In this document: piece by piece, positions 8,880 through 64,000 of the stretch
Numbering within the stretch: the first letter of the stretch is position 1
Layout: each line of letters begins with the position of its first letter
Sequence record: LR756511.1
DNA length: 64,000 nt
Direction: 5' to 3' (one strand)
Position numbers and translations under genes: made by a program
Notes under the pieces: generated by a model
Seen by the model: only the letters and a program-made list of their open reading frames with translations
The model's database searches: none
What the model was told of the DNA's origin: nothing

Positions 8880-9057
8880 TTTACCGTCCTATAGAAATAA
8901 GGGCACTCATTACCCAATCTTGCCTTCAATTCATCCGCTTCCGCAATCAACTTCTTTGCTTCCTCACCATCATGCGGCTCACGGCGATATCTTACCTCCT
9001 CACGACCATTAGGCCAAACGTATACTATTTCAAGAGTCATTGCAATATCATCTTCGA

Positions 9058-9390: not shown

Positions 9391-9399
9391 ATAGCCTCC

Positions 9400-23417: not shown

Positions 23418-23864
23418 TCATAATGGTTCGTAGGCAACAACATGAACGTCTGGTAAATCCGCTGCGAATTTCTCGATTTCTTGCTTTACGTCCTTCCAAG
23501 CAAGACCGCCAAGACCGCACCCTAACGCACAAAGAGCAATAGATTTGATATCATTGTCTTTAATACTGTTCTTTAAAGACTCAAGCCCATGAGTGATATA
23601 CTCCATTTTGGATGGAGATAGATCGTCTTTGGTGGGAAAGTTAATAATGTATTTTGGATTGTCTGCGGGGTTCTTCCAAACATGCATATAACCAGGACGT
23701 AGTATTCCTTTATTGCATGTCAGAATGTAGTCCAGATTCATTTCAGGATAGCGACGTTTGAATGCTAAAGCTAATCCAGCACCCATAATACCAATACAAT
23801 TCACGGCATTGGTAATCGCTTCGCATCCTGAATCGAAAATATCACCTTTACGATATTCCAACAT
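23418..23864 (-). CDS. Macrodomain ADP-ribose hydrolase (DarG/TARG1-like)
   Basis: GDIF, NAVNCIGIMGAGLA, IINFPTK, ALGCGLGGLAW. Confidence 0.88.
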   Translation of the reverse strand: MLEYRKGDIFDSGCEAITNAVNCIGIMGAGLALAFKRRYPEMNLDYILTCNKGILRPGYMHVWKNPADNPKYIINFPTKDDLSPSKMEYITHGLESLKNSIKDNDIKSIALCALGCGLGGLAWKDVKQEIEKFAADLPDVHVVAYEPL

Positions 23865-32079: not shown

Positions 32080-32790
32080 ACGGTTCTTAGTCAATTGGCG
32101 TTCATCCCACCGCGACCCCTGAATGAAATCAGACCGAACCCACTTAAAACGATGGGCAATCTTCTCATCATCACAAACCTTAATGTAAATCCCCTCACGC
32201 CTGTCTAAAGTGGAATAAGGACTTTTTTCGCCCATAAACTTTTCAAGAAATTCGAAATTTGGCACTTCGCCCTTGTGAAGCAAAGGCACCAATTCAAAAC
32301 CCGCCTGTCCTAATAACTCCCTAGCTTTACCAGTAGGTATAAAGATGCCCCTTTCCCAATCATAAATGTCATAGGGAATAAAGTAAGTGGGGAGATGATT
32401 GTACTCAATGCCGTGGAGAGCATAAAGCCACTCGCCATATACCGCAGCATCAAATCCACAAAGATCATTAAGCATCACAAACTTTGGACGAATTTCATAG
32501 ATGTGATTCCAGATCGGCGCAAACTGAAGTTTCGCTGGCGTTCGCAAATGACCTGACTTCCCCTTCTGGAGAATGTTATTACGATTACGAACAATGGGAT
32601 TGTCATTATAAAAACAAATGCCTACCGAAGCTCCGTCAATCTTCTCTTCACAAAACGTGTTCTCATTGCTGAAAATGACATCACATTCTTTTTCAGAGGC
32701 AATAAGATCAAGGCGTTGCGCATTTGGCTTATAACACAAATGCTTTGTGCGAGGATATTCAGGAAGTATTTGTTGCGGGTTCACAAGCAC
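32065..32790 (-). CDS. RNA ligase family (Rnl2-like) protein
   Basis: YPRTKHL, EEKIDG, YGEW, YDIYD, REGIYIK, FKWVRSDF. Confidence 0.88.
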   Translation of the reverse strand: MLVNPQQILPEYPRTKHLCYKPNAQRLDLIASEKECDVIFSNENTFCEEKIDGASVGICFYNDNPIVRNRNNILQKGKSGHLRTPAKLQFAPIWNHIYEIRPKFVMLNDLCGFDAAVYGEWLYALHGIEYNHLPTYFIPYDIYDWERGIFIPTGKARELLGQAGFELVPLLHKGEVPNFEFLEKFMGEKSPYSTLDRREGIYIKVCDDEKIAHRFKWVRSDFIQGSRWDERQLTKNRLAVN

Positions 32791-33179
32791 GCTCCCAACA
32801 ATCCAGTAATCATGAACAAAGTAAAAAGGATGGTTAGAAAACCATAACCAAACCGAAGAAAATCACTCGTTATAAACCGTTCCACATCCAATACCAGTTG
32901 TAGGCACAGACGCACGCCCCAAAAAACGGCTAAATAGCCGCACACAAAGCGAGAAAGCATACTGCCGTCAGCTAATGCCGTCGAATTACATATACATACC
33001 AACCCGTTAAAGATAATAGCCAGAACGACATAGCCGCCATAAACCCAATAAAGCTGCTTGTGCAGCCGTGGCAAATGCTTAAATACAGTTTTCCATTCAA
33101 GTTTGAAAGGCAATGAGAAGGACACCAACAACACACTTAATTGTAACCACCCAACGATAAAGATTAAATTAGCAAGCAT
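32781..33179 (-). CDS. Membrane protein coupled to the MBOAT gene
   Basis: About four TM segments; starts 1 nt after the MBOAT stop. Confidence 0.7.
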   Translation of the reverse strand: MLANLIFIVGWLQLSVLLVSFSLPFKLEWKTVFKHLPRLHKQLYWVYGGYVVLAIIFNGLVCICNSTALADGSMLSRFVCGYLAVFWGVRLCLQLVLDVERFITSDFLRFGYGFLTILFTLFMITGLLGACL

Positions 33180-35773: not shown

Positions 35774-35986
35774 TTACTTTTTCCTTTTCACAGGATAAAC
35801 TTGCCTTCCGTTGATTTCGATAATGTATTTAGAGGATAATATCTCTACACCGAGAATCGTTCCATTTTCAGCGAAATCAATAATTACTTCACCCTTTTCA
35901 TCCACATCTATTGAACGCGCATAGATTGTATTTTCATCTAGTTTAGCAAACCGAATATAAGCAGGTTTCATACTTTTGCTGGGCAT
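35774..35986 (-). CDS. DUF2283-like protein
   Basis: AYIRF...IIDFAENGTILGVEIL. Confidence 0.65.
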   Translation of the reverse strand: MPSKSMKPAYIRFAKLDENTIYARSIDVDEKGEVIIDFAENGTILGVEILSSKYIIEINGRQVYPVKRKK

Positions 35987-37131
35987 AGGCCAAGTTCCTC
36001 TTTAATCTGCTTAACCTTCACAGGATCACCAGTATGCTTGCCTTCATCATCGGAAAGCTTCACAACTGGTCTAAGACCATCACCGAATCCAAAGTCTGCT
36101 CCCGTAAGCTTAATAACCATATTAAGCGGTTTGTGTCCGCAATCGTTTGTGAGGAAGGTTCCAATCCCCATCACACAAGGAATTTCTTCTCCAAACTCCT
36201 TCTGTAAAGCAATCGCCTTATCGTCATTAAGACTATCACTGAAAACAATTTTCTTTGTCTTGGGATCAATACCCAAATCCCTATAATGCTGGAGCATCTT
36301 GCGTCCAAACTCAGCGGGATCGCCGCTATCCTGTCTCACACCGCTAAAAGCATCCGCCATTTCTTTGTCAAAATCTCGCAAGAATATATCGGTAGTAAGT
36401 GTGTCTGTAAGAGCAATACGCGCAGACGGCTTATATTCCTCCATCCAATACCCCATCCATGCCCGATTCGAAAGTGTCGCGCCGTGCAAAGCCTGCATAG
36501 CCATCACAGATTCATGAGCATATGTGCCAGAGACAGGAACCTTATACTTCATTGCAAAGTAAGGGTTACTAGTCCCTTTAAATCCGTCATACAGTCTCAT
36601 GTAAGCAACAACCGCATCTTGTGCCGCTTTAGAAAAGCGGCGGCGCGTGCCGAAGTCAATCCAATTAACGCCCTTACAATTCATATTAGCGGCTTTATCA
36701 ACAATACGCCTCTGCCAATCATTAGCTGGCTCCGCATTAGTCATTCGGAAATATAATTCGCTGATAATTGCCATCAGCGGCACTTCCCACAAAATTGTGT
36801 TTTTCCATTTGCCACGCACAGAGACATTTAGTTTACTTTCATGTTGAGTTATTATAACATCAGCAGGTTTAAATTTAAACTCATTAAGCCAATTCACATA
36901 ATCCGATTTGAAAACCGATTGATCTCTTAGCCACTGGTTCTCCTCATTGCTCAAGCTAAGATGAGACATACTATCAACTTCAACCCTTAAGCGGTCAGCA
37001 AATCCAACAGGGAAATTATCAATCCCCCTGTTAATAAATTGATATGTGGCAATAGCTTCTGGAAATTTATGAAATACCACTTGTTGTTGGGTAAGTTTAT
37101 AGAAATCTGTATCTAATATGGACATAATCAT
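35968..37131 (-). CDS. pncB: Nicotinate phosphoribosyltransferase
   Basis: SILDTDFYKLT, LWEVPLMAIISE, DFGTRRRFS, GTSN, GT.AHE, LTDT, G.RQDSGDP, FSDSL, GIGT.LTND, KLSD..GK. Confidence 0.92.
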   Translation of the reverse strand: MIMSILDTDFYKLTQQQVVFHKFPEAIATYQFINRGIDNFPVGFADRLRVEVDSMSHLSLSNEENQWLRDQSVFKSDYVNWLNEFKFKPADVIITQHESKLNVSVRGKWKNTILWEVPLMAIISELYFRMTNAEPANDWQRRIVDKAANMNCKGVNWIDFGTRRRFSKAAQDAVVAYMRLYDGFKGTSNPYFAMKYKVPVSGTYAHESVMAMQALHGATLSNRAWMGYWMEEYKPSARIALTDTLTTDIFLRDFDKEMADAFSGVRQDSGDPAEFGRKMLQHYRDLGIDPKTKKIVFSDSLNDDKAIALQKEFGEEIPCVMGIGTFLTNDCGHKPLNMVIKLTGADFGFGDGLRPVVKLSDDEGKHTGDPVKVKQIKEELGLCPAKV

Positions 37132-37560
37132 TTGATTACCCTTTTGATGTGGGCAAATTCCATATGCAAATTTGGCCCAATTACAGTTGTGACAAAGAAT
37201 TTGATACCCTTCTGGATAATTATTTTTTGCAAGCCATCTGTAGAATCCGCTTTTGCCTTTTTCGTCGCGGTCTTGCCTGCCATTACCATTAACATGATCT
37301 ATGGCTAAAAACTCGATATGGTCTTCTCCACAACAAATACACTTTCCACCATATGATAATATAACATTTTCTCTGGTTTTACGATATCGTTTTGCAACTT
37401 CACAATTTATTTTATCGGCACAGTCATCGCAATTACGTTTCTCATTATTCGTTGGTTTGCCACAACGAGGGCATAATCCATTTTTAACACGATCATCCCT
37501 TTGTTTTTTCTGCCAAATTCTATTAGCTTCATTTCTTCTGTCTTTGTCTTTATAGGGCAT
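37132..37560 (-). mobile_element. HNH homing-endonuclease-like domain fused in frame to the NAPRTase
   Basis: YGGKCICCGE...FL.IDHVNG.G...YQILCHNCN.AK..YG.CPH; no stop before the pncB ATG. Confidence 0.8.
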
Positions 37561-37918
37561 TACTGTTTCCGAACCCGCCAAGCGTCTTGCCTTCGTTCGT
37601 ACAGCTGCCACTTTGCGGGGGCAGTTCGGCTGGTGGCTTCCATCCAGGCGGTTTCCAATCGTCAAATTCCCGTGGCGATAACTTCTCTACCAAATCTCTG
37701 ACTCGTTCCCAAAGCTTATCCGCCGCCATGTTCACAATATCATTCTGCATTTTCACCAAGTTGAATTTGTCTGTGATGCTTAATGCGCGGTCTTCAAAAA
37801 GCACAAGCTCAAGAGCGTCATTAAACTCTTGAGTCTTATGCTTAATTCCCGCCGCCATATTATTCAGAAAACGCAACTTCACAAATCTTTCTGATTTGTG
37901 CCATTCATCCCTGGTCAT
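37550..37918 (-). CDS. Hypothetical protein
   Basis: ATGA overlap upstream. Confidence 0.55.
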   Translation of the reverse strand: MTRDEWHKSERFVKLRFLNNMAAGIKHKTQEFNDALELVLFEDRALSITDKFNLVKMQNDIVNMAADKLWERVRDLVEKLSPREFDDWKPPGWKPPAELPPQSGSCTNEGKTLGGFGNSNAL

Positions 37919-54637: not shown

Positions 54638-55141
54638 TTAATTCTCCTTAATCGCCTTCGTCCAATAGGCGAATGAGTTTTCAGAAACTAAATTTTCCGT
54701 TTCGTGCAGTTCCAGCAAGAAATTATAAAGCCGTTGAGCAAGGTCTTCTCTTCCCAATAGCTTTAATGAAGTCAAGCAACGTGTAATGCGGAGCCAATTA
54801 TGATTAATCTGGTTCCAGCAATAACGCGCTCGATCTTCGAAATTTTCCGCTTTATAGACTTTCTGGCCATCTGTGTTAAGGCCAAGAAAGCGTAGGAAGC
54901 GGTGGAATGAGTACGAAAGGTTAGCCTGCAACGTTTCACTCTGTTTAAACAGACTGATTTCTTCGTCTGTTAGGAGTGGAGCGTCAGGATTAAAGTTGGA
55001 GGGTTCTTTAAGCGGGAACAGCCACTGCACCCACGAATGATCGAATTCCAGCCAGTCGTCATCTTCATCCTGAATCTGGAATAGATATCGTCCGTCGATA
55101 TCAGGGTGATACCCGCTATAGAAGTTACAGATTTCGCTCAT
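54638..55141 (-). CDS. OGFr_N (opioid growth factor receptor) domain protein
   Basis: LE..H.WVQWLFP...S.FNP.AP.L, F.RFL.FLG, NHN.LRITRCL.SL..LG. Confidence 0.88.
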   Translation of the reverse strand: MSEICNFYSGYHPDIDGRYLFQIQDEDDDWLEFDHSWVQWLFPLKEPSNFNPDAPLLTDEEISLFKQSETLQANLSYSFHRFLRFLGLNTDGQKVYKAENFEDRARYCWNQINHNWLRITRCLTSLKLLGREDLAQRLYNFLLELHETENLVSENSFAYWTKAIKEN

Positions 55142-55463
55142 ATTGCTCTAAAAAGTGATTATAAGCGTTTTCAAACGCTTTTGTACTATCGGTCTTGACT
55201 AGTACAGCATCGACTGGCACTTGAAAGTCATCGTTGCCGATGGAGATTTCAATGCAGCTTTTGCTGTTAACTCTAACGATGTGGTTCGTCGCTAGAGAGT
55301 TTTTGAAATACGTTTCTACTTGCGTGTTAATTACATCAAGCATGGACTGTTGCCACATCACGGCAACGCTGCGGTGATGGAGGAGAAGTTTGAAGTATTT
55401 GTTTCTATAGTAATTTGCCGCCCGCGCCGCCAGGATAAATAGAAACGACAATGCGAGGATCAT
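55125..55463 (-). CDS. Hypothetical protein with N-terminal membrane anchor
   Basis: GGGGAG ribosome-binding site; hydrophobic N-terminus. Confidence 0.55.
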   Translation of the reverse strand: MILALSFLFILAARAANYYRNKYFKLLLHHRSVAVMWQQSMLDVINTQVETYFKNSLATNHIVRVNSKSCIEISIGNDDFQVPVDAVLVKTDSTKAFENAYNHFLEQYERNL

Positions 55464-55479
55464 GAAGCTCCCCTTTGTA

Positions 55480-55564
55480 ACTTTGTAGCAACTTCAAACT
55501 AGGCGACTTTGCCACAACTTCACAACTGCGTAGGTAACGCAGCTACTGCGTAAATAACGCAGCT
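55480..55564. repeat. Two pairs of short direct repeats downstream of the suppressor tRNA
   Basis: ACTTTG..CAACTTCA.ACT x2 (55480-55500, 55506-55527); ACTGCGTA..TAACGCAGCT x2 (55525-55544, 55545-55564), each of the latter a hairpin. Confidence 0.7.
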
Positions 55565-55588
55565 TTTCTGGCGTCATTGCCCTGTCAG

Positions 55589-55661
55589 CGCTTGCGGCGG
55601 GAGTCGAACCCGCAACCAATCAGTTTTAGAGACTGTCGCTCTGCCATTGAGCTACGCAAGC
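55589..55661 (-). tRNA. Amber-suppressor tRNA (anticodon CUA), tRNA-Trp-like body
   Basis: GCTTGCG-TA-GCTC-AATGGCA-GAGC-G-ACAGT-CT[CTA]AA-ACTGA-TTGGTT-GCGGG-TTCGACT-CCCGC-CGCAAGC-G. Confidence 0.88.
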
Positions 55662-55669
55662 AAGCGCCT

Positions 55670-55987
55670 TTAAAGCGAATCAATCAACTCTTTGGATGCT
55701 TCCTTGCCGAGAAGGTCCACCAACTTCTTAGCCGTGCGAACCAATTCCGCAACACCACTGAGAGGATTTGCGGGCTTGGGAGCAGGAGCGACAAGCGACG
55801 GGGCGGTAGATGCGGTTCGCTTGGCGGCTTCCTTCCTCATCTCGTTTCGCCTGTTGTGGAAACTCGACTGAGGGAGCGGAATCCTGTAGGTGCGGAAGAA
55901 CTCATTCTTGGCTTGCGCGTAAGTGGTATCCAAACCCTTCTTTTCCAGAAACTCACGAATCTTCGGCGTCAACACCGACTCTGCCAT
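55670..55987 (-). CDS. Small basic protein
   Basis: AGGAG ribosome-binding site; C-terminal AKKLVDLLG.....LID.L helix. Confidence 0.65.
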   Translation of the reverse strand: MAESVLTPKIREFLEKKGLDTTYAQAKNEFFRTYRIPLPQSSFHNRRNEMRKEAAKRTASTAPSLVAPAPKPANPLSGVAELVRTAKKLVDLLGKEASKELIDSL

Positions 55988-55999
55988 GACACACTCTCC

Positions 56000-56218
56000 T
56001 TACTTTAGGCGGTGAACAATCCGCCCCTTTGTTAAGTCATAAGGTGAAATTTCAACTTCAACCTTATCACCAGGAATCACCCGAATAAAATTCTGACGCA
56101 TCTTACCGCAAATGTGCGCCAGAACAGTATGTCCGTTGTCCAATTTTACTCGAAAACTTGTATTCGGCAAGGATTCCAATACTTGCCCTTGAACCGAAAT
56201 TCCATCCGTCTTAGCCAT
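56000..56218 (-). CDS. infA: Translation initiation factor IF-1
   Basis: [46 protein letters not shown]. Confidence 0.95.
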
Positions 56219-56511
56219 TAGTCCTCTACCTTAGTTACTTTCCCAAAGATACCATTCTTGCCAACCCAGCCATTTATATGACCGTGATTATTAGAAATTT
56301 GGTATCTCTCGCCTTGGATCGCCGTCAATAAATGAACGTAATAGCGACCCTTAACCTTACAAAAAACCACATCGCCCTTATTCAATTCCGAAACATCTGG
56401 ACTAATGGTTATCAATTGTCCAGAATTAATCCGTGGCTTCATGGACGATCCGCGTGGACGGCACTGAACCGTCTCACCTTTAATCAATTTATCCGCAAAA
56501 TGCCTATTCAC
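56218..56511 (-). CDS. S24/S26-like peptidase domain protein
   Basis: GSSMKP, GDVVF, YYVHL, G.I.GKV. Confidence 0.65.
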
Positions 56512-56737
56512 TCACTGGCTCTAAAATATAAGTATGAAACCCTTGCTCCGCTAACTGTCTAAGCAAAACATCGGCAAAGGTCACGTCTTCGAAGGTTCCG
56601 TCATCATTCTGCACCGTCACCTTGTACTCTTTCGAGAAGCGACAGGCGATACAATCACATAGCCACGGCTCTTGTCTTTTCGCGTGGCTCATGGCATGAT
56701 TCGTGGCGACAAGATGCAGGAATGTCGCATTTTCCAT
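56504..56737 (-). CDS. Hypothetical protein
   Basis: Packed ORF. Confidence 0.5.
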   Translation of the reverse strand: MENATFLHLVATNHAMSHAKRQEPWLCDCIACRFSKEYKVTVQNDDGTFEDVTFADVLLRQLAEQGFHTYILEPVSE

Positions 56738-57189
56738 TAAGATACCCTTTTTTGATACTTGGGACGATTTAGGAAGTCTGCAATCACATAAGACCCGTTG
56801 AACTTCTCACGGGCATCAACGCAAGTTACAACAACCTTTTCGCCATCTCTTTCAATAACCACAAAGAGCGCGTCTTCGTAAACAAGGAAAGAATAGCGAT
56901 GATATCCATACCGTTCATACATATAGGTCATGAATCGGTCATTGTTCTGGAAGATACGAATATCATCGGCCTTTTCCAATTTTGCACAAATGATGTCGTT
57001 CCATTTGCGACGATCACTTAGCATGTTCCGCATCTTATACATCAGGCTGGTGCAATTATTGCAACCCTTGCAATTGCCTAGATGCTGGAATTCGTTAGCA
57101 CACTCTGAAAATCGTTCCACATACCGTTGACGAGCATGGTAAGTTATCGCGTATTTACCTCGCAGCGTTGCGACGGGTTCCATGTGCAA
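56737..57189 (-). CDS. Hypothetical protein (RelE/DUF4258-like ITYHA..RY..R start)
   Basis: ITYHARQRYVER, VVVTCV. Confidence 0.5.
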   Translation of the reverse strand: MHMEPVATLRGKYAITYHARQRYVERFSECANEFQHLGNCKGCNNCTSLMYKMRNMLSDRRKWNDIICAKLEKADDIRIFQNNDRFMTYMYERYGYHRYSFLVYEDALFVVIERDGEKVVVTCVDAREKFNGSYVIADFLNRPKYQKRVS

Positions 57190-57221
57190 CTCCTATAACT
57201 GTGCCCATGTGATACTTTCAT

Positions 57222-57249
57222 ATCTTACTACGAATTCTCACTTTGTAAA
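57222..57249 (-). promoter_or_regulatory. Sigma70-like promoter
   Basis: TTTACA-N16-TAAGAT. Confidence 0.4.
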
Positions 57250-58220
57250 AACTTGTCACAGAAATTGTCAGCCAAGGCAAGAATCTCGTCGCCCTGATCC
57301 AACTTTTCTCTAAGGTAAGAAGGAAACACTTCTTCGCCACGGAGAGCGCCCAAGAGAGCGCCTACCATAGAACCGTTCGTGTCAGTATCACCGCCAGAGT
57401 AGATAACGTCAATCAGCGAATGATACTGGAATGGACTTCGCATAAAGAACGCATACGTGAATGGCAACGAATTATAGACATAACAAGTGCCACGCCCGTA
57501 TTCATTAATTATGTGTTTGTCGTCGTACAGTAGCTTCGGATTTTCGTAAAGAGGAATCAGCGTCTTAAGACGCTCCGTTAAATCGTCCCCAAGAGTATTG
57601 GAATAGTAAGACCGCCCAATCTCGCTAGCACGGACAATCTTTTTGACGAATGCCTTGGTATCGAATTTATGATATTCGTTTTCCAGGCATTCCGAGAGGG
57701 CCATCACATGAGCGAGACAGGAAGAAACGGCAACGCTAGTCTGATGAGTCATTGCCGTAAAATCAACACAAATCTTCACGAAATCATCGAATTTCTTCGT
57801 TAAAGCAAAATAAGCAGCGAGCGGCGCCGCCTTCATTACAGGGCCATTTCCAAGACCACGATTAATTGCCCCGTCAAAATCGCCAGCCTTAGACCAATGC
57901 GTTCCATCTTTAATCTTTTTGACAGCTTCCCTCGTTGTCGATCCCCACCCAGCAGTCGTATCATCATAAGCTTCGACGTGGTACTTGCCCACCTTTTCCA
58001 TATCAACGGCGCCAGCTTCTAAAATCGCTTTTGCAACCGCAATGGATAATTGGGTATCGTCCGTCCATGTGCCTAGCTTTTGGCGTCGTCCTCTTGTAAA
58101 ACTGCTTTTTCGTTTTAGCTTTTCTAATGATTCATAAGGCTTGGATTCAAAGGGCATACCGAGGGCATCCCCGATAGCCAATCCAAGGAACATGCCTCTA
58201 ATTTTCTCTTTGAGGTTCAT
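57228..58220 (-). CDS. ADP-ribosylglycohydrolase (ARH/DraG family)
   Basis: G.AIGDALG, WTDDTQL, GNGPVM..AP, GGDTDT..SM.GALLGA. Confidence 0.92.
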   Translation of the reverse strand: MNLKEKIRGMFLGLAIGDALGMPFESKPYESLEKLKRKSSFTRGRRQKLGTWTDDTQLSIAVAKAILEAGAVDMEKVGKYHVEAYDDTTAGWGSTTREAVKKIKDGTHWSKAGDFDGAINRGLGNGPVMKAAPLAAYFALTKKFDDFVKICVDFTAMTHQTSVAVSSCLAHVMALSECLENEYHKFDTKAFVKKIVRASEIGRSYYSNTLGDDLTERLKTLIPLYENPKLLYDDKHIINEYGRGTCYVYNSLPFTYAFFMRSPFQYHSLIDVIYSGGDTDTNGSMVGALLGALRGEEVFPSYLREKLDQGDEILALADNFCDKFLQSENS

Positions 58221-58411
58221 ATAGCTTCTAGAAGGGCGGTTGTTGAAAGGTAAATTTCCTTGTTATCTGGCTTGACAACCATCAATATCTTAGCTAAATT
58301 TGGCTTTTTCGTCTTGAGTTGCCATAGGTTTAAAGCCTCCTCTGCTGCTTGTCTAGGGGTCGCGGTTTCTACTGTTGCTCTAAAGTCTCCCGAAATAACC
58401 ACATACTTCAT
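58217..58411 (-). CDS. Hypothetical protein
   Basis: ATGA overlap with the ARH gene. Confidence 0.55.
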   Translation of the reverse strand: MKYVVISGDFRATVETATPRQAAEEALNLWQLKTKKPNLAKILMVVKPDNKEIYLSTTALLEAI

Positions 58412-58421
58412 GCAAAACTCC

Positions 58422-58464
58422 TGAAAAAGTCAGATTATTCTATCACAATAATCTGATCTTTTCA
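58422..58464 (-). terminator. Long imperfect hairpin
   Basis: TGAAAA..TCAGATTATT / AATAATCTGA..TTTTCA. Confidence 0.5.
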
Positions 58465-58492
58465 AGATAATTATGCTTAAACTCCTTCCAAT

Positions 58493-59005
58493 TTAGGAGA
58501 TAAGTATGTCCGCGTCTTTGAGTGCCTGTGTCAGTTTTATCAAGTGCTTACACATTCCAGGGAGTTCTTTTGGGTTTATTCGGTAAGCACCCTCGTATTT
58601 TGTGCGTTTCTTCCCTTGTAAAGAATGATCCAAGTGATCGTAATAATTAAACCGCCAGTAGAAATCGCCACACTCACAGCGAACCAACACATCATTCTTT
58701 GGCGATAACCGCTCCACGTAGAATGGAATGCCATCATCCGCCATCACTTCGACGGCATTTGCGGCTGGGCCATTGTGGTAGCGTACAGCTTTGAAAACGA
58801 TGATTGGGTTATATTCCCTATCTTCGTTCTGAGCTAAGCCTTTAAAGAACAGCGTCTTTACACCCTTAAAGGGGATTATAGACAACTGTGTTATACGTAT
58901 AGGATCAACCGCGTGCTGTCTCTTTGCAGTATTAGGAAATGCATCTACGGCTGAGTCATAAAGATCATTTAATGAAGATTCATTAAGCCATCCGCTAAAG
59001 TTCAT
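58493..59005 (-). CDS. SWIM-type Zn-finger-like phage protein
   Basis: V.CECGDF.....P....GMCKHL. Confidence 0.65.
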   Translation of the reverse strand: MNFSGWLNESSLNDLYDSAVDAFPNTAKRQHAVDPIRITQLSIIPFKGVKTLFFKGLAQNEDREYNPIIVFKAVRYHNGPAANAVEVMADDGIPFYVERLSPKNDVLVRCECGDFYWRFNYYDHLDHSLQGKKRTKYEGAYRINPKELPGMCKHLIKLTQALKDADILIS

Positions 59006-59012
59006 GCATTAT

Positions 59013-59297
59013 TTAATCTGCTGGTGTGTAATAATACAAATTCATTTCTTGCAATATGCCGAAAATATCCCCTCTATTAATTTTAGTCCTGTTGGCTTTA
59101 TAGCACTTCTCTTTAGCCTTTTCCCTTACCTCATCACGTATTCTATTGAGAACAATAGTGAGCAATTGATCTGCGTCTTGTTCCCACTTCACACAATCAG
59201 ACAGTTTTTCAGGCGTAGTCTCTTGTTTAGTCTCTTGCCCTAGCAAGTAATCCAGGCCAAATAGTTCTCTTATAGGTTTCATATAAGTTAGCTCCAA
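59013..59297 (-). CDS. Hypothetical protein, paralog of 59426-59650
   Basis: Shared LL.I.L.R.RD.V.E..K..CY. Confidence 0.55.
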   Translation of the reverse strand: MELTYMKPIRELFGLDYLLGQETKQETTPEKLSDCVKWEQDADQLLTIVLNRIRDEVREKAKEKCYKANRTKINRGDIFGILQEMNLYYYTPAD

Positions 59298-59425
59298 AGC
59301 CAGCTACAGCCCAATCCATGCCAGCGGGACAATTAACACCCAAATTAACCCAAGTGGGTCTATTACATTTTGGGCAATGAATAATAAGACCTTCAAGGAC
59401 GGTTTCGCCCCAATCCTTGCAATGC

Positions 59426-59650
59426 TCACACTTCGGCATATTTGTAGTCATCTGGCTCTATGTAGGATGATACTGGCTTCATCATACCATTTAAAACGTT
59501 GAGAACATCAGTTGTAGAAACTTCTGATTGGTTGCTGCGGTAGCAAGTCATTTTCACTTCTTCTGCAACTTGATCCCGCACACGCTTCAAAATAATGTCT
59601 AATAAATCGGAAGCTTCTGGTTGCCAAGTTATTTTATCGGTTAGCTTCAT
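59426..59650 (-). CDS. Hypothetical protein, paralog of 59013-59297
   Basis: Shared motif as above. Confidence 0.55.
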   Translation of the reverse strand: MKLTDKITWQPEASDLLDIILKRVRDQVAEEVKMTCYRSNQSEVSTTDVLNVLNGMMKPVSSYIEPDDYKYAEV

Positions 59651-60224
59651 TGGCTATTTCCGCCTTAACTCTCTTGAGCCATTTGATCCCAAATTCCTTC
59701 TTTGTCACTCCCTCAATCGAATACCCGTCACGGTCTAACTTGCCTAGAGGGAAATAACGAACGAACATCTTACCCCAATGCACAGCCTTCTGCAACTGAT
59801 CTAGACGATAATAATTAATTGCAAGACGGATTCGACAATCACTCCGTAAAGCCGTCATTTGGGGACGACTCTCATTGCAAACGATAAACCTCTTCATTTC
59901 TAGAATGTCATGATAAAGCTTAATAGCTTTCTTTACGTCTTTCCTTGTGCCATAACAAAGGGCACCAGCTAAATGCCACAGCACCAAAGGACACAAAGAT
60001 TTAGTAATGGCGTGAGCTTTACGAGCGTAGCGTAAAGCAATTTTGTATTTTTTTTGTTCGTAATAAGCGGAAGACAATTGAGCGTAAAGCCAATGTGCAT
60101 CCCAATCGCCAGGAGGCAATAGCTTTAGTTCTTTTTTTGCTAAAGCTATTGCCTCCTTGAAGCGATTACGGAGAATTAGGCTGTTGATTCGTTTGCCAGC
60201 AGCCTTTTGTTCTTTGCTAAGCAT
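59634..60224 (-). CDS. TPR-repeat protein
   Basis: LSSAYYEQKKYKIALRYARKA repeats; start reassigned to ATG 60224. Confidence 0.65.
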   Translation of the reverse strand: MLSKEQKAAGKRINSLILRNRFKEAIALAKKELKLLPPGDWDAHWLYAQLSSAYYEQKKYKIALRYARKAHAITKSLCPLVLWHLAGALCYGTRKDVKKAIKLYHDILEMKRFIVCNESRPQMTALRSDCRIRLAINYYRLDQLQKAVHWGKMFVRYFPLGKLDRDGYSIEGVTKKEFGIKWLKRVKAEIANEANR

Positions 60225-60885
60225 ACTTCTTAACTTTAATTTGATTGCTGTCGCCTTCGATTTCGAAAGCAACTCCCTGAATACCAACCTTCGTAAAGGT
60301 CGCACGACCAATGCGGACGTTATCATAACGATCCACATGATAATCTGCAACAGGAGTTGCCCCAGCAGGCAACGACGGAGCAAGAACCAATTCCGAAGGA
60401 TCGCTTTGGAAAACGACAACTGGATCGCTGTCCTTCAAGCCAAGCTGACGAACCAGCTTATTCGGAATGCAAAGACGGTCGGTAGTATCGAACTTATAAA
60501 TTACCGAACCGTCTGCGGCAACGTCCACACCATCATCAATGGTTGAGATGGATGCGGCGGGAAGTGCCGCAACAGGCGGAACGGTAGCAATCGCCGCCAC
60601 GGGCGCACTGACAGGCTGACCACTATATGTGGACGGGTCCGCAGAAAGAGGATGATAAATCCACGGTTGAGGATTCACATTTGGCAAATTGGCAAGCGTT
60701 CGGTTATAGCTGAACATATTGCCGTTATCGAACATTCGGTGAACTTCCTTCTTCACTTCGAAATGCTGAACTCGCTGCTTGGATCGCTTACGCACAGCCA
60801 TCGTCACATCCCAAGCGGTAAACATGGTGTCAGCGTTGACAAATTCATTCACCGCGTCTTCAATCTCGTTCAGATACATGCACAT
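60217..60885 (-). CDS. Hypothetical protein with C-terminal AbrB-like domain
   Basis: D...RLCIPNKLVRQLGLK..D.V; start reassigned to ATG 60885 behind GGGAG. Confidence 0.6.
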   Translation of the reverse strand: MCMYLNEIEDAVNEFVNADTMFTAWDVTMAVRKRSKQRVQHFEVKKEVHRMFDNGNMFSYNRTLANLPNVNPQPWIYHPLSADPSTYSGQPVSAPVAAIATVPPVAALPAASISTIDDGVDVAADGSVIYKFDTTDRLCIPNKLVRQLGLKDSDPVVVFQSDPSELVLAPSLPAGATPVADYHVDRYDNVRIGRATFTKVGIQGVAFEIEGDSNQIKVKKYA

Positions 60886-60910
60886 AGTTTTCTCCCTTGT
60901 TAAAAAGTTG

Positions 60911-62059
60911 TTACTCGTCTCGTAAGCCCATAAAGTACGGGAATCGTGGCTTGCCATCAGGCGTCAAATTGAAATATTTGACCGTGCCAGTCTTCCCGAT
61001 ATAGTCATCTTTTTTCTGTAGCATTTGCTTGCAGAAGTCACGGGTGCCCTTAATATTACAATCGAAGCTAGTGGAACCATCTGCAAATGCACTACCATCA
61101 AGTTTCTTGCATGTAATATTGCCAGCACCACCACTACGATTACCAACACCTTCTGTAACTCCTACGATCAAATACTCGCCATCCTTGAATTCTTTGTATT
61201 TCAGAAGGCTTTTCGTTCGTTTCTGCTCATACTTGGCGTCGAAACGAACCATTGCCCCCTCGTAGCCTTCTTCAACAAATTGCTCATAAGCTCCAACGAT
61301 ATCGTTTTCACACATTGCTTCGTGTGTTTCAACCAGTTGGAGACAGCCACGCTTTTTAGCAAAACCAAGAACCTTCTTTAGTTCTGCATGGCGGGCGCTA
61401 AACACATCCTCCCAAAACGGGAAGTCATAAATGTGATATTCAATATGCGCAGCCGCTTCCTGTAGGTCTTCCTTCGTCGGCTTTGTCTTCTTTGCTAACG
61501 AGCAAATTTTATTGAAATCGTTAGCAAACTTGTCTGCATACACTTCGCCGTCGAAGATATACTTTGGGTTATACCTAAAGAGCGGTTTTAGAGCTTCGTA
61601 AATGTGAGGAATAGATTTATATTCCTTGCCGTTACGAGTCCACAAACCATCTTTATTGGCAATAAGCCGCAAGCCATCAAGCTTCGGTTGCACCCAAAGA
61701 GAACCATCGCCCAAAGCTTTTAATGCTTCATCCTTGTAATCTTGCCATGATTTCGCAAGCATTGGCTCAAAGAAAGAAGCATTATCAATATCATTAATAT
61801 CGGCCTTATAGCCTTTGTCGAGCTTCTTTTGATACTCGGATTTCGCTTCAGACATAGCTTGTTGTTCGGCAGTCGTTGCATTTGCACGACCAATATTCTT
61901 ACTGCCGCAGACTGTCCATTCGGATGTTACGATTTCACCATCCATAATTCCTGAATGGGAGCGATGCTTGCCGCCATCGACTTCCTTTTCCCAAATCTGA
62001 ATTTTGCCATCAGAGCGGCGGCTATAAAGCGGTGGTAATTTCATATCTGATAACTCCAT
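60911..62059 (-). CDS. ATP-dependent DNA ligase with WGR-like N-terminal domain
   Basis: PMLAK, QPKLDG, FDGEVY, YHIYD, EGAMVR, LLKYKEF. Confidence 0.92.
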   Translation of the reverse strand: MELSDMKLPPLYSRRSDGKIQIWEKEVDGGKHRSHSGIMDGEIVTSEWTVCGSKNIGRANATTAEQQAMSEAKSEYQKKLDKGYKADINDIDNASFFEPMLAKSWQDYKDEALKALGDGSLWVQPKLDGLRLIANKDGLWTRNGKEYKSIPHIYEALKPLFRYNPKYIFDGEVYADKFANDFNKICSLAKKTKPTKEDLQEAAAHIEYHIYDFPFWEDVFSARHAELKKVLGFAKKRGCLQLVETHEAMCENDIVGAYEQFVEEGYEGAMVRFDAKYEQKRTKSLLKYKEFKDGEYLIVGVTEGVGNRSGGAGNITCKKLDGSAFADGSTSFDCNIKGTRDFCKQMLQKKDDYIGKTGTVKYFNLTPDGKPRFPYFMGLRDE

Positions 62060-62247
62060 TCTTGTTCAGCGGCCATTTCGAACACCTTTTCTCCATATTT
62101 CTCGTAAGCTATGGAGTGCTTTGCGCAAAATCGACAAGCGTTATAACGCTGGATAACTCCCGTAGGCTTTCCTAAGAAATTGTCACGCACGCGAAACCAG
62201 CAGTCATATAACTCGTCAAAGTCCAAAAAGCATATCTCACACTTCAT
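62041..62247 (-). CDS. Small Cys-containing protein
   Basis: CEIC...CRFC. Confidence 0.45.
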   Translation of the reverse strand: MKCEICFLDFDELYDCWFRVRDNFLGKPTGVIQRYNACRFCAKHSIAYEKYGEKVFEMAAEQEWSYQI

Positions 62248-62446
62248 TTAGGACTTCCTCTCGCATTTCGTACAGCTCATCCTCACAGCGGATTCTGTTT
62301 AGCCTATTACAGACCCTTTGAACCTTGGCCGAATCTCTAGAGATTACATTATCTCGATAGAGATTCGGCCAAGACTCTATGTAATCCACCAACGGATACC
62401 ATTGTCCGCGAGCGGATCGCCACCATAGCTTATACAACTTTATCAT
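62237..62446 (-). CDS. Hypothetical protein
   Basis: ATGA overlap with the PARP stop. Confidence 0.5.
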   Translation of the reverse strand: MIKLYKLWWRSARGQWYPLVDYIESWPNLYRDNVISRDSAKVQRVCNRLNRIRCEDELYEMREEVLNEV

Positions 62447-64000
62447 GTGTCAAATTCGCAAAGGTAGCGAAGCTGATTTTGCCTACCATCGTAAATAATC
62501 CATTCATTATTCACGACGCCAGATCGTCCAGCCTTACCGAACACGCAATGGTGTCCCTTTGGAGGCGAAGCATAACCGCCAGAAGAAGGAGCTACATAAG
62601 GGCTTCCAAGGACCACATCGCAAGCAAACATGAAGGCGGCACGACCACGCACGTTGCCATCACCAGACGACCAATAAGAGCCGCGAAGTGACGTATAACC
62701 AGCAGATTTCCGCCAATCGTCAGCGAAGTAGCAGCCTGGACCGAACATCGCACCAGTAATTACAACGCCGACTAGTTGCTTGGGTAGTCGCAAACCTTCT
62801 CTTAAAATACCACGGACATTAACAGAACGGGTGCCGTGGAATAGGAGAGCGGTATTTGTGCTGTGATAACGCTTTAAGAGAGTGTTGTCATCCAAGTCAT
62901 TTCTTTCTGTCGGCTGGTAGGGCGGTCGTTCCGTAATGCGGGGCTTCTCATCAATAATACCGCCCTGAGTCTTTTCAACCTTTTCCTGATCGCCGTTACG
63001 GGCAACCTTCCACATATTCTTGATCTTCATGTTGCCAACGCCCGCATGACGATTGGCACTGGCCTTCGGCCACCAATTATAGAGGAATTTTCCAAGAGCC
63101 GTGCTAGGATCAATCCATTCCATCTTAAGTGGCATTCCATCAAACGGATCGCTTGCATCTGTATCCGAATCCGTCGTAACATATAGAGCAGATTCGAATG
63201 CGTCAAGGTCCGCAAGCCAAGCGAGAATGTTATCCTTATTTAAAAGCCAATCCTTCGGCGGGCAATGTAGAGCCTTCTTTTTGGGAATGCGGCTATACAT
63301 GACGCGAGTAAGCTGATTAAGCTCATTGTCAGCAACTTGATCGTCAACATTATCGCCAACCTTAATGAGCCGCTTCTGCGCTTCCACAAGAATATCGCGG
63401 GCTTCATTAATTGACTTTTGAGTTGGAAGGCAAGCGTCGGCCATTGACCCGCGAGTATAAGAAACCGTAGCCACGTTTAAATCTTTCATTAAACGCAGCG
63501 TATTGGTGTCAATGGTAATGGAAGGCTTTTTAGCGCCATTGCCATTCATGACTGCTGGCTTTGCCGTAGTCTTTGCGCCTTCGTTAAGCTTAATCGTCTT
63601 CGCGTCAGGAAGACCCGTTGAGCGAGTTGCCATAGGACGCACTAAATAGCAGTCCTTATTTGGCTTGGCTTGAAGCGTGCGAATGCCCGCTACAGTCGTC
63701 CATTGCCCACGCTTATCATTCTTTTCGTGAAGTTGCTTGGCGAATTCATACTGAGCATCGGATTCGCTGCTGCATTCAACAAATTGGAATTGAGGTGAAG
63801 AGGCACCTGTGCGACCCCACTCAAAATAAGCATACCACTTCTTAGTCTTGCGGTTTTGGACTACCGCACCGTGATAATACTTGTTACTATCCTTGCCTGA
63901 CTGATCGAAGCAGCCAAGGTCGGCAATCTTACAGTTTTCGAATTGACCATCTTCTGTTGCTGGCGGTCCAAAACACTGAAAATCTTCGGGAGTAGAACTG
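62443..64000 (-). CDS. Poly(ADP-ribose) polymerase (WGR - helical - catalytic), 5' truncated by window end
   Basis: Frame open to base 63999; WGR motif SNKYY...EWGRTG; catalytic LFHGT (H), FGPGCYFAD (Y), NNEWIIYD (E). Confidence 0.9.
   Translation of the reverse strand, partial: SSTPEDFQCFGPPATEDGQFENCKIADLGCFDQSGKDSNKYYHGAVVQNRKTKKWYAYFEWGRTGASSPQFQFVECSSESDAQYEFAKQLHEKNDKRGQWTTVAGIRTLQAKPNKDCYLVRPMATRSTGLPDAKTIKLNEGAKTTAKPAVMNGNGAKKPSITIDTNTLRLMKDLNVATVSYTRGSMADACLPTQKSINEARDILVEAQKRLIKVGDNVDDQVADNELNQLTRVMYSRIPKKKALHCPPKDWLLNKDNILAWLADLDAFESALYVTTDSDTDASDPFDGMPLKMEWIDPSTALGKFLYNWWPKASANRHAGVGNMKIKNMWKVARNGDQEKVEKTQGGIIDEKPRITERPPYQPTERNDLDDNTLLKRYHSTNTALLFHGTRSVNVRGILREGLRLPKQLVGVVITGAMFGPGCYFADDWRKSAGYTSLRGSYWSSGDGNVRGRAAFMFACDVVLGSPYVAPSSGGYASPPKGHHCVFGKAGRSGVVNNEWIIYDGRQNQLRYLCEFDT

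Follow-up and report, generated by a model that had tools for sequence, protein, structure and literature searches.

The window analyzed here is a 64,000-nucleotide stretch of LR756511.1, the 595-kb genome of an uncultured phage. We think that it carries an ADP-ribosylation cassette that is conserved in a clade of huge phages and consists of a PARP, the protein P246 and, in roughly half of the lineages, an ADP-ribosylhydrolase (ARH), and we give this reading a rough probability of 55%. In the genomes compared, the persistent core is PARP with P246 and often ARH, while a DNA ligase stands beside PARP only sometimes. An earlier note on this DNA had pointed to clustered PARP, DNA ligase, ARH, and OGFr_N genes. 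Pfam matches to minus-strand ORFs of the window confirmed this clustering, and all four domains are genuine, with E-values far beyond chance. For both PARP and OGFr_N, the nearest bacterial homologs belong to Planctomycetota; the host of this phage is likely a member of this phylum, and the huge phages of the clade (0.35 to 0.67 Mb) probably infect its members too.

Table 1. Features of the window, ordered from the PARP end
Feature	Coordinates	Strand	Remarks
PARP	62443..>64000	-	529 aa; first 11 codons past window end
Two small ORFs	62041..62446	-	69 aa; 68 aa, Cys-rich, zinc-ribbon-like; between PARP and ligase; ORF list
ATP-dependent DNA ligase	60911..62059	-	382 aa from first ATG; called 377 aa from M6
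P246	60217..60957	-	Conserved, PARP-associated; P246N gene ≤3 kb downstream in 32/51 PARP loci
TPR-repeat protein	59634..60419	-	Pfam TPR_10/TPR_2; maximal ORF
P170	58493..59005	-	Conserved; between P246/TPR and ARH
ARH/DraG-family ADP-ribosylhydrolase	57228..58220	-	330 aa; Pfam ADP_ribosyl_GH 1.3e-52
P150	56737..57189	-	Conserved; immediately after ARH
S24 (LexA/CI-like) peptidase-domain protein	56218..56511	-	97 aa; Pfam Peptidase_S24
IF-1/eIF-1a-like protein	56000..56218	-	72 aa; eIF-1a family called in relatives
tRNA, anticodon CUA (amber-reading suppressor type)	55588..55661	-	ARAGORN; Rfam tRNA 65 bits
OGFr_N-family protein	54638..55141	-	167 aa; Pfam 5.5e-26
Nicotinate phosphoribosyltransferase family	35968..37665	-	565 aa; Pfam NAPRTase + NAPRTase_N
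Macro-domain protein	23418..23864	-	148 aa; Pfam Macro 2.7e-19; whole-record scan

The PARP ORF extends 32 nt past the window (the complete ORF was read in locus L001), and Pfam detected a PARP (2.6e-19) and a WGR (4.3e-09) domain in it. The WGR domain (aa 44 to 107), with the canonical motif FEWGRTG, is followed by a middle region of ~250 aa and the catalytic domain. Alignment showed an intact H399/Y435/E510 triad in register with PARP1, and this triad and W72-G73-R74 are invariant among 39 PARP homologs. In the PDB the protein matches PARP1, tankyrase, and PARP2 best. Eukaryotic PARP1, PARP2, and PARP3 and bacterial PARP homologs likewise have a WGR domain and then a catalytic domain with H-Y-E, and the sequence supports a eukaryote-like, PARP1-3-like writer with the WGR domain as its predicted break sensor. 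Unlike PARP1, PARP2, and PARP3, however, the phage enzyme has neither zinc fingers nor BRCT, its middle region is not recognized as a helical regulatory domain, and its catalytic core is only ~30% identical to theirs, with polymer formation and DNA dependence being predictions. Because no PARP_reg/HD is detectable in the family (Pfam did not detect PARP_reg, with 1 of 39 homologs at E 0.21), PARP1-like autoinhibition and DNA-dependent activation stay unproven. Relatives carry one to three small ORFs in the gap between PARP and ligase; downstream of more distant PARP loci there are NADAR, DUF4326, histidine phosphatase, and RNA-repair genes.

P246 had previously gone unnoticed as a PARP partner, although it is part of the persistent core: the PARP-P246N pairing spans 44 to 79% PARP identity with variable spacers. 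P246 is predicted to have a novel N-domain of ~80 aa, a Pro/Ala-rich linker, and a C-terminal DNA-binding domain of the AbrB/MazE swapped-hairpin type. F46, H65, H73, and Y101 of the N-domain are invariant in the alignment, and the C-domain has AbrB matches in the PDB (E 0.0065), with 10 of the 36 members also matching Pfam MazE_antitoxin. The N-domain also shares 40% identity with the N-terminal part of a retron-type reverse transcriptase (RT) adjoining a bacterial PARP. The TPR protein that follows has homologs at the equivalent position in L002, L004, L008, L177, and L178; its true start is probably internal, because the 5' end of the maximal ORF overlaps P246.

A whole-record scan found no second copy of ARH in the genome. 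The protein has the motifs of the binuclear metal site (GDALG..E25, T53-D54-D55-T56, and GGDTDT), which align with DraG and ARH3, and its PDB matches are Lmo0067, T. thermophilus ARH, DraG, and ARH3 (E 4e-18 to 3e-10). The nearest curated models, DraG and Tri1, were the only NCBIfam matches and stayed below threshold. ARH lies within 9.5 kb of PARP in 21 of 40 related loci, and the two keep company although the genes between them change. ARH had been proposed to recycle the PARP polymer, with which an ARH near PARP with an intact metal site agrees; however, two complete PARP phages have no ARH in their genomes, so it is not an obligatory recycler. ADP-ribosyltransferases near ARH-family hydrolases with intact metal sites are similarly found in DraT-DraG, Tre1-Tri1, and phage ART-ARG pairs (Iyer et al. 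2022). In contrast to these, the writer here is a WGR-PARP rather than a DraT/Tre1-type mono-ART, PARP and ARH are separated by five genes and a distance of 4 kb, and some complete PARP phages lack the pairing. Homologs of P170 (53 to 69% identical) occupy the equivalent position in L002, L004, L005, L008, L177, and L178, and a PHROG search gave just a weak match to a PHROG that has no assigned function. P150 homologs follow ARH in L002, L004, L005, L008, L177 to L179, L197, L206, L207, L221, and L241. The S24 and IF-1 proteins (78 to 84% identity across the clade) are collinear neighbors by gene order, with nothing pointing to a role in ADP-ribosylation.

The OGFr_N protein was modeled as all-helical (pLDDT 94), with H35, Q39, S48, N51, D53, H114, N115, R118, and R121 as invariant polar residues in the alignment. 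No solved structural relative was found by Foldseek (E ≥ 0.5) or VIA, whose best match (Z 7.9) was generically helical. Its co-location with PARP is confined to the close clade (3 versus 37 of 40 loci), and no ARH or PARP was found near OGFr_N in more distant huge phages. Neighbors of bacterial OGFr_N genes are heterogeneous, but the Atlas includes a cluster of ARH+OGFr_N fusions from unrelated bacteria, and a cyanobacterium (L136) has an ARH-OGFr_N gene pair or operon. OGFr_N is more probably a loosely linked accessory working with ARH rather than with the ligase. Elsewhere the window holds a wider set of predicted NAD/ADP-ribose genes. The NAPRTase, found by whole-record scan and carrying a 180-aa N-terminal extension, appears to serve NAD salvage, and the Macro protein appears to be a second type of ADP-ribose-processing enzyme; a PRPP synthetase gene lies 10 kb past the window end.

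In the ligase ORF, Pfam identified DNA_ligase_A_M (2.3e-19) and DNA_ligase_OB_2 (1.9e-08). The protein belongs to PHROG 114, and its PDB match is the ASFV ligase (6imj, E 3.6e-14). It is built of an N-domain (aa ~6 to 98), a nucleotidyltransferase domain, and an OB_2 domain, with K126, D128, G129, R131, D170-G171-E172, K287, and K289 as invariant motif residues. The earlier note had likened its N-terminus to WGR, and this holds at the fold level but not at the sequence level. An AlphaFold2 model of residues 6 to 100 (pLDDT 79.5), WGR-like in fold, was used for fold searches. Foldseek returned the N-terminal domain of ASFV ligase first (E 1.5e-4, TMq 0.69) and then 2ra8. VIA-align against 48,161 chains gave 2ra8 (Z 9.0), ASFV ligase (Z 8.6), the WGR domain of PARP1 (Z 6.4 and 6.3, two entries), and that of PARP3 (Z 6.3, rmsd 2.2 Å over 70 residues), with the best unrelated fold at Z 5.1. 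At the sequence level, however, the ligase has no WGR motif, the true FEWGRTG belonging to PARP. Pfam WGR matched 1 of 47 family members, at only E 0.89, the N-domain profile recovered from the PDB the ASFV ligase alone and no WGR structure, and an hhalign comparison with the WGR profile of PARP returned P = 0.055. The ASFV ligase (6imj/6imk) shares the three-part build, with a mixed alpha/beta N-terminal DNA-binding domain before nucleotidyltransferase and OB_2, as do the bacterial WGR-NT-OB_2 ligases (Williamson and Leiros 2020). WGR has been annotated on NT-OB_2 ligases from Planctomycetia and delta-proteobacteria (PMC7470946), whereas the phage N-domain, lacking the W-G-R motif, goes undetected by Pfam WGR. 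The ASFV N-domain is described in the literature as a unique fold; a WGR-like fold for it and for the phage domain is suggested by our model-based search. The ligase family has more than 3,800 proteins of equal length and domain content, and the WGR-fold N-domain, present in thousands of phage ligases, is its normal DNA-binding clamp. Whole-record scans found no second DNA ligase in the genome, so the enzyme is replicative, and it is predicted to be the phage's ordinary replication and housekeeping nick-sealing enzyme.

The earlier note saw in the cluster a PAR-signaled break-repair module like that of PARP1 and ligase III, an analogy that is only partly supported. In a dedicated module of this kind, PARP would sense nicks in phage DNA and make PAR, the ligase would be recruited or regulated and seal, and ARH would recycle; we consider this unlikely. 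It gains from the presence of writer and eraser and from the WGR-type fold of both PARP and ligase. The PARP1-3 version of this fold reads DNA breaks, and that of PARP2/3 reads 5'-phosphorylated nicks, which are the ligase substrate. PARP-ligase adjacency also recurs in three arrangements: PARP-x-LIG-P246 in the clade of the window, PARP-LIG-x-P246-like in L191 and L235 (ligase 33% identical), and LIG-PARP-x-P246N in L239 (ligase 33% identical). This exceeds expectation for one gene among ~600 and hints at some ligase-PARP coupling; in L004, another PARP type (430 aa, with PARP_reg) fills the slot before the ligase. The PARP1-XRCC1-DNA ligase III system likewise joins a break-sensing PARP to an ATP-dependent ligase, here encoded side by side, together with a hydrolase able in principle to reverse the mark. 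A comparable idea, with phage PARPs as damage sensors in self-repair, has been published on bioinformatic grounds for gut jumbo phages (PMC11662467). However, the adjacency is not conserved: of 51 loci, only 6 have a ligase no more than 3 kb downstream of PARP. Close relatives with an intact PARP-ARH cluster have the ligase ~100 kb (L177 and L178) or ~500 kb off, and the order PARP-P246-TPR-P170-ARH-P150-S24 is kept without it in L008, L177, and L178. In three complete PARP phages the ATP-ligase is missing and a distant NAD-dependent ligase is used instead; PARP phages do not combine the two types, and either can sit far from PARP. No PARP, ARH, or OGFr was found within 10 kb of family ligases at 80 sampled loci on viral contigs, and no PARP or ARH in the whole genomes of four complete phages with a family member. 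The ligand of PARP WGR domains is DNA breaks, not PAR, and Pfam found in the ligase no PAR-reader domain (BRCT, PBZ, macro, or WWE); no XRCC1-like scaffold was found either. Unlike DNA ligase III, the enzyme has no BRCT, PBZ, or zinc-finger reader of PAR or nicks. As the genome's sole ligase it also differs from ligase III. On our reading, its place beside PARP is lineage-specific though recurrent, and not required for the cassette.

We find it rather improbable that the locus is a toxin-antitoxin-like conflict module, with PARP as an NAD+-consuming or target-modifying effector derived from or shared with bacterial defense, P246 as regulator or antitoxin, and ARH as enzymatic antidote, as in DraT-DraG and DarT-DarG, serving host takeover, superinfection exclusion, or counterdefense. 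The AbrB/MazE-type domain of P246 is typical of antitoxins, a role resembling that of T4 ARTs, the modification of host machinery, has been proposed for phage PARPs (PMC7824862), and the literature counts ART-ARG pairs among phage T-A systems (PMC9503650). Moreover, one bacterial chromosome of 4.0 Mb has a PARP 63% identical to the phage enzyme that lies 50 nt downstream of a retron type XIII-like RT (PADLOC 6e-155) carrying the P246 N-domain, and a PemK toxin gene adjoins this PARP. Type XIII retron RTs (Mx162/Mx65 class) coevolve with a WGR-like protein (PMC7736814), but this known accessory is WGR with HEAT repeats, whereas the phage has WGR with PARP and no RT at this locus. The retron context is a single bacterial locus, and the bacterial PARP of L009 is solitary. 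No PADLOC model matches PARP, ARH, P246, or OGFr, and phage NAD salvage suits use of NAD+ over its depletion. The WGR domain argues for dependence on nucleic acid ends, which is compatible with a conflict module and with our preferred reading alike. It is very improbable that the four genes form no functional module and are neighbors through one inherited collinear accessory block. The order of ClpX, M50 peptidase, glyoxalase, S24 peptidase, and IF-1 is conserved around PARP, and the separation of OGFr_N from ARH and PARP in more distant huge phages, like the mixed neighbors of bacterial OGFr_N genes, favors this reading. The unrelated flanking ClpX, M50 peptidase, S24, and IF-1 genes are collinear over the PARP-ARH range, so part of the PARP-ARH linkage may be inherited gene order and not selection. 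However, the PARP-P246N pairing survives to 44% PARP identity, P246N recurs as a domain fusion adjoining a bacterial PARP, ARH stays with PARP through changes of the intervening genes, and unrelated bacteria have ARH-OGFr_N fusions.

For the ADP-ribosylation cassette that we favor, the analysis shows domain content, catalytic residues, how the ligase N-domain folds, gene-order statistics, and per-genome gene counts, whereas activation by nucleic acid ends, polymer versus mono-ADP-ribose as product, the targets, and what P246 and OGFr_N do are inferred. DNA or RNA ends arising during infection would be captured by the WGR domain and thereby activate PARP, which would consume NAD+ to ADP-ribosylate itself and further targets, with P246 as a possible regulator or targeting factor. 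The Mg-dependent ARH and the Macro protein would remove the modification, and the NAPRTase together with the PRPP synthetase just outside the window may sustain the NAD+ supply.

The window matches bases 124,001-188,000 of LR756511.1 at 100% identity; the record is an unannotated 595,163-bp "uncultured phage" genome. The sequence is densely coding, nearly all genes lie on the minus strand, and genetic code 11 suits it, giving 98 ORFs over 85% of its length. The earlier note had described PARP, DNA ligase, ARH, and OGFr domains clustered at one end, and all four were found by Pfam with the E values tabulated below.

Features of the window and its flank, with the matches that identify them
Feature	Position	Strand	Identification
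Macro-domain protein	23418..23864	-	Scan and Pfam
NAPRTase-family NAD-salvage enzyme, unassigned 180-aa N-terminal extension	35968..37665	-	Scan and Pfam
OGFr_N protein	54638..55141	-	Pfam 5.5e-26
tRNA, anticodon CUA (amber-reading), between the OGFr_N and ARH genes	55588-55661	-	"Pyl" per ARAGORN
IF-1/eIF-1a-like protein (72 aa) and S24 (LexA/CI-type) peptidase-domain protein (97 aa)	56000-56511	-	
ARH	57228..58220	-	Pfam ADP_ribosyl_GH 1.3e-52; PHROGs agrees
P246 (N-domain and AbrB-like domain)	60217..60957	-	
ATP-dependent DNA ligase	60911..62059	-	DNA_ligase_A_M 2.3e-19, OB_2 1.9e-08; PHROGs agrees
PARP	62443..>64000	-	Pfam PARP 2.6e-19, WGR 4.3e-09; complete ORF 529 aa; PHROGs agrees
PRPP synthetase-family protein	31790-32863 of locus L001 (LR756511.1 with flanks), about 10 kb past the window end		

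The CUA tRNA had raised the suspicion of stop-codon recoding, which we rejected for the window: coding under code 11 is already dense, TAG ends 13 of the 98 ORFs, the ARH gene included, and reading it as sense did not lengthen the ORFs appreciably. Rfam matched only two tRNAs in the window. The IF-1-like and S24 proteins adjoin the cassette and are 65-84% identical clade-wide. With Macro and NAPRTase proteins inside the window and, beyond it, the PRPP synthetase-family protein, which may be a true PRPP synthetase or a NARP1-type ADPR-PP synthetase, the phage has a dispersed NAD+/ADP-ribose toolkit; such gene sets have already been catalogued for jumbo phages (PMC7824862, PMC9503650).

The PARP was compared with the PARP1-3-like class (ARTD clade). 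Its catalytic domain scores 70 bits against PF00644 (cutoff, 26.7), and the alignment with human PARP1 spans the WGR and catalytic domains with the His-Tyr-Glu triad, known for NAD+ binding and elongation, in register. The motifs LLFHGTR, GCYFADD, and NNEWIIYD align with PARP1 H862, Y896, and E988. Among 39 PARP homologs, H399, Y435, E510, and W72-G73-R74 are invariant, so the real WGR motif of the cluster is in the PARP. This WGR domain lies N-terminal to the catalytic domain (PF05406, 36.8 bits against a cutoff of 22), is present in all 39 homologs, and gave weak direct matches to PARP1/2 WGR chains. For the helical regulatory domain, which is autoinhibitory until DNA is bound, PF02877 (PARP_reg) matched one of the 39 homologs weakly (E = 0.21), and the PARP1 HD gave only a nonsignificant collinear stretch with the phage PARP, leaving the middle region of this PARP without a domain assignment. 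Used as a single-sequence query against viral contigs, the PARP found no match; an alignment-based query was required. The related locus L004 carries in the same slot (8346-9638) a PARP of another type, 430 aa long with a recognizable PARP_reg domain, that aligns with the window PARP over the catalytic domain only (37% identity). The ligase there is 72% identical, and the locus looks like an in-place swap of one PARP type for another. A chromosomal WGR-PARP with 63% identity was also seen on a 7.8-Mb bacterial contig (locus L009, 10001-12013). Its N terminus is extended by 140 Lys/Ala-rich residues, which matched the histone H1-like HC2 model below threshold (E = 5e-4; 20.7 bits; cutoff, 40), and ARH, ligase, and OGFr are all absent from its vicinity.

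The ARH scores 179.8 bits against Pfam PF03747, a match that covers positions 1-286 of the 287 in the profile, and its binuclear Mg/Mn-site motifs GDALG..E, TDDT, and GGDTDT align with those of Lmo0067 and Thermus thermophilus ARH. Bacterial ARHs, DraG, and ARH3 are all distant from it to a similar degree (E = 1e-18 to 1e-10), and the NCBIfam matches were subthreshold (DraG, 85 bits against a cutoff of 337; Tri1, 61 bits against 490). These matches favor neither the ARH3-like class (poly- or Ser-linked ADP-ribose) nor the DraG/ARH1/Tri1 class (Arg-linked ADP-ribose). Two complete PARP phages have a Macro protein only and no ARH, which shows that ARH is not obligatory.

The ligase exceeds the cutoffs of both PF01068 and PF14743. 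Nucleotidyltransferase motifs I (KxDGxR), III, IV, and V are present, and K126, D128, G129, R131, D170-G171-E172, E267-G268, K287, and K289 are invariant in 47 sequences. The family is very large, with 3,825 matches, all about 365 aa long and including the N-domain. Its best solved relative is the African swine fever virus (ASFV) ligase (E = 3.6e-14), and the alignment reaches into the N-terminal DNA-binding domain of that enzyme.

The earlier note had likened the ligase N terminus to a WGR fold. We aligned 48 N-domains and folded ligase residues 6-100, and the model (pLDDT, 79.5) has four strands followed by one long helix; the WGR fold is a curved antiparallel sheet that packs against a single long helix. 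Foldseek placed the ASFV N-domain first (E = 1.5e-4) and 2ra8 second. VIA-align, which is independent of Foldseek, run against 48,161 chains returned as its top six 2ra8 (Z = 9.0), taken here as a top fold match and not as an annotated WGR protein, the ASFV N-terminal domain (Z = 8.6), and four PARP1/PARP3 WGR structures (Z = 6.3 to 6.4); unrelated folds begin at Z = 5.1. The root mean square deviation was 2.2 to 2.5 Å over 70 to 72 residues for the two isolated-domain nuclear magnetic resonance WGR entries; that of the PARP3 WGR (Z = 6.3) is 2.2 Å over 70. This ranking bears out the WGR idea at the level of fold and makes the ASFV domain look WGR-like as well. The likeness did not extend to sequence: Pfam WGR matched one of 47 family members (E = 0.89), hhalign of the N-domain against the phage PARP WGR profile gave P = 0.055, a search of the PDB with the N-domain profile found the ASFV ligase alone, and in the alignment of 48 N-domains the W-G-R motif is absent, with S-G at its position. 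As the Z values are moderate, we regard the relationship as a fold resemblance and not as proof of shared descent. In PARPs, the WGR domain reads DNA breaks and not poly(ADP-ribose) (PAR), so the WGR-like domain of the ligase is best seen as a DNA clamp and not as evidence for PAR signaling. When the homologous phage domain is the structural query, the ASFV ligase N-terminal domain (6imj/6imk) groups with the PARP1/PARP3 WGR domains and 2ra8. That domain has been described as a unique fold, and WGR annotations have already been published for NT-OB_2 ligases from Planctomycetia and deltaproteobacteria (PMC7470946).

We assembled PARP-centered loci from the encoding contigs, IMG/VR (22 loci), and JGI/ENA metagenomes (62 loci) and scored the neighbors by tblastn; the counts that follow are of loci without dereplication and include some duplicates. 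A gene with the P246 N-domain lies within 3 kb downstream of PARP in 32 of the 51 loci long enough, and the pairing persists down to 44% PARP identity. ARH follows within 9.5 kb in 21 of 40 loci and OGFr_N in 3 of 40. The ligase is found within 3 kb downstream in 6 of 51. ClpX, an M50 peptidase, S24, and IF-1 are collinear over the same range, and synteny by itself therefore cannot prove function. At more distant PARP loci, the downstream genes encode histidine phosphatases, metallophosphatases, NADAR, DUF4326, a T4-type RNA ligase, and Thg1. PARP and P246, often joined by ARH, make up the better-supported unit. To our knowledge, none of the jumbo-phage PARPs has been assayed so far, nor had their gene context been charted.

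Seen from the ligase, the association was absent: none of 80 viral-contig loci with ligases 42-51% identical has PARP, ARH, or OGFr within 10 kb, and four complete jumbo phages with the ligase have neither PARP nor ARH genome-wide (positive control run). Each gene occurs without the other, and the conserved co-occurrence expected by the earlier note did not hold in the synteny check. The gene order at the PARP locus of a 587-kb relative is PARP-P246-TPR-..-ARH-..-S24-OGFr_N; its ligase is elsewhere, at a distance of about 500 kb, with a second ARH, NAMPT, and PNKP as neighbors. L177 and L178, whose PARPs are 70-73% identical, likewise have a cassette without the ligase, which is about 100 kb off. 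LR756511.1 itself has one full PF01068 match, its sole DNA ligase, besides one weak 213-aa nucleotidyltransferase ORF, and a whole-record scan found no NAD-dependent ligase. Three complete PARP phages (498,568, 488,051, and 572,167 bp) have no ATP-ligase and one distant NAD-dependent ligase each. A single ligase per phage, of one type or the other, is typical of a replicative enzyme (compare PMC9503650). The ligase region of the 587-kb relative (L003, 12656-18418) also contains a resolvase, a TnpB/Cas12f-like gene, and a metallophosphatase near the ligase, NAMPT, PNKP-like gene, and divergent second ARH (299 aa, 24% identical). These genes resemble a further NAD/repair cluster, and the ligase was perhaps relocated by mobile elements.

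Proteins of the P246 family are 190 to 300 aa long; a Pro-rich linker joins their conserved N-domain, roughly 80 aa in size, to a swapped-hairpin domain of the AbrB/MazE type. F46, H65, H73, and Y101 are invariant in the N-domain; the C-domain matched AbrB in the PDB (E = 0.0065) and Pfam MazE_antitoxin in 10 of 36 members. The ESM Atlas gave no usable match for P246, and no PADLOC model matched PARP, ARH, OGFr, P246, P170, P150, or P522. The N-domain also begins a 650-aa reverse transcriptase (RT) encoded on a 4.0-Mb bacterial chromosome (40% identity over 77 aa). At this locus (L010, 7997-11620, on the 4.03-Mb contig ERZ25039474:contig_12364), a 50-nt gap separates the RT gene from a downstream gene for a WGR-PARP that shares 63% identity with that of the phage, and next comes a PemK toxin gene. 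PADLOC assigned the RT to retron type XIII (6.4e-155), and type XIII retron RTs are known to coevolve with a "WGR-like plus HEAT" protein (PMC7736814). L010 is possibly a retron system with a PARP effector. Since it is a single locus, and another bacterial PARP (L009) stands alone, we treat the retron link as a lead only.

For the OGFr_N protein, PF04664 scored 91.8 bits against a cutoff of 22, and the domain is present in all 143 homologs found by word search. We know of no biochemical function for this family, animals included. The model is all-helical (pLDDT, 94). Fold searches with it were uninformative (Foldseek, E ≥ 0.5; best VIA Z = 7.9, to generic helical repeats), and the sequence had no match in the PDB. 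Nine polar residues invariant in 43 homologs suggest a pocket. Two independent lines hint at a tie to ARH: a 99-member bacterial ESM Atlas cluster annotated automatically with ADP_ribosyl_GH in 98% and OGFr_N in 94%, and the cyanobacterium Stenomitos frigidus, in which the ARH gene ends 112 nt before the OGFr_N gene. A general ARH-OGFr_N operon was rejected, as an ARH neighbor was Pfam-confirmed in only one of 80 bacterial loci (the cyanobacterial L136), with two further weak tblastn hints; these neighborhoods are heterogeneous and include HSP20, aldehyde dehydrogenase, and kinases, among others. Huge phages that are more distantly related have OGFr_N away from PARP and ARH. No paper was found in the literature that ties OGFr_N mechanistically to ADP-ribosylation. 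In Marinimicrobia and Rhodospirillaceae (L147, L148, L151, L157, L159, L161, L165, L167, and L169), a same-strand ORF of about 155 aa precedes OGFr_N. These ORFs form one blastp cluster, HSP20 by Pfam in one representative (L159), and aldehyde dehydrogenase is often near. The setting is conserved too, but of another kind that has no relation to ADP-ribosylation.

The nearest bacterial OGFr_N homologs are almost all from Planctomycetota, including complete Singulisphaera and Tundrisphaera chromosomes, and named PARP and OGFr matches are from Rubripirellula and Gemmataceae. On these sequence matches, the half-megabase phage clade probably infects Planctomycetota. Close OGFr_N homologs also occur on "bacterial" contigs of hundreds of kilobases, such as L097 (a 411-kb contig of a Planctomycetota metagenome-assembled genome [MAG]) and other MAG contigs; these may come from huge phages and have been binned into Planctomycetota MAGs. 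The 373-kb and 390-kb relatives (G010/G011) carry the label of proviruses in IMG/VR. Both the binning and the provirus labels bear on host assignment.

How the ligase relates to the PARP can now be weighed. The earlier note proposed a PAR-signaled break-repair module like PARP1-ligase III, and parts of it stand: a writer that plausibly senses breaks, an eraser, and a ligase with a WGR-like fold. Against it, the ligase does housekeeping work for the phage and neighbors PARP only occasionally, and ARH is dispensable in some lineages. Moreover, whereas the PARP1-XRCC1-ligase III system has a PAR-reading or PARP-binding module on the ligase or scaffold, no such Pfam domain (BRCT, PBZ, macro, WWE, or ZnF) was found in the phage ligase, its 47 homologs, or the neighbor ORFs scanned, a set without several short ORFs (64-112 aa) between 55.1 and 62.4 kb. 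The adjacency is still beyond pure chance and recurs in three arrangements. PARP-x-LIG-P246 is shared by the window, L002, L005, and L201, and also by L004 with its PARP_reg-type PARP; L191/L235 have PARP-LIG (33% identity)-x-P246-like; and L239 has LIG (33% identity)-PARP-x-P246N. We therefore retain a real but optional PARP-ligase coupling as a possibility, at about one chance in five.

A reading that joins these observations, to which we give a probability of roughly one in eight, is an end-triggered ADP-ribosylation switch linked to retron-type defense. WGR-PARP, P246, and ARH would form a switch triggered by nucleic acid ends and evolutionarily tied to bacterial type XIII-like RT plus WGR defense modules. 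Where the ligase abuts the PARP, the two WGR-fold proteins would share 5'-phosphorylated ends as their target. The PARP might, for instance, place ADP-ribose on nicks or ends of phage DNA as a cap or mark, which ARH would strip before the ligase sealed. As a partner of ARH, OGFr_N would be a new domain that processes or binds ADP-ribose.

PARPs in jumbo phages were listed earlier (PMC7824862), and a self-repair role for them has been suggested (PMC11662467); phage PARPs and WGR-ligases are thus both known kinds already. Four leads are new: a conserved partner of the PARP (P246), a connection to retron RTs, a WGR-like fold assignment for the ASFV-type ligase domain, and a connection between ARH and OGFr_N. 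The analysis replaces the PARP-ligase III analogy with a better-defined experimental object: a WGR-PARP with a small AbrB-like partner and often ARH, for which one bacterial locus, with a retron-type RT alongside, may hold a counterpart. Three side results are testable: a WGR-like fold for the DNA-binding domain called "unique" in the ASFV ligase and for that of a very large phage ligase family, OGFr_N paired with or, by automatic annotation, fused to ARH in bacteria, and Planctomycetota as the probable host of a half-megabase phage clade.
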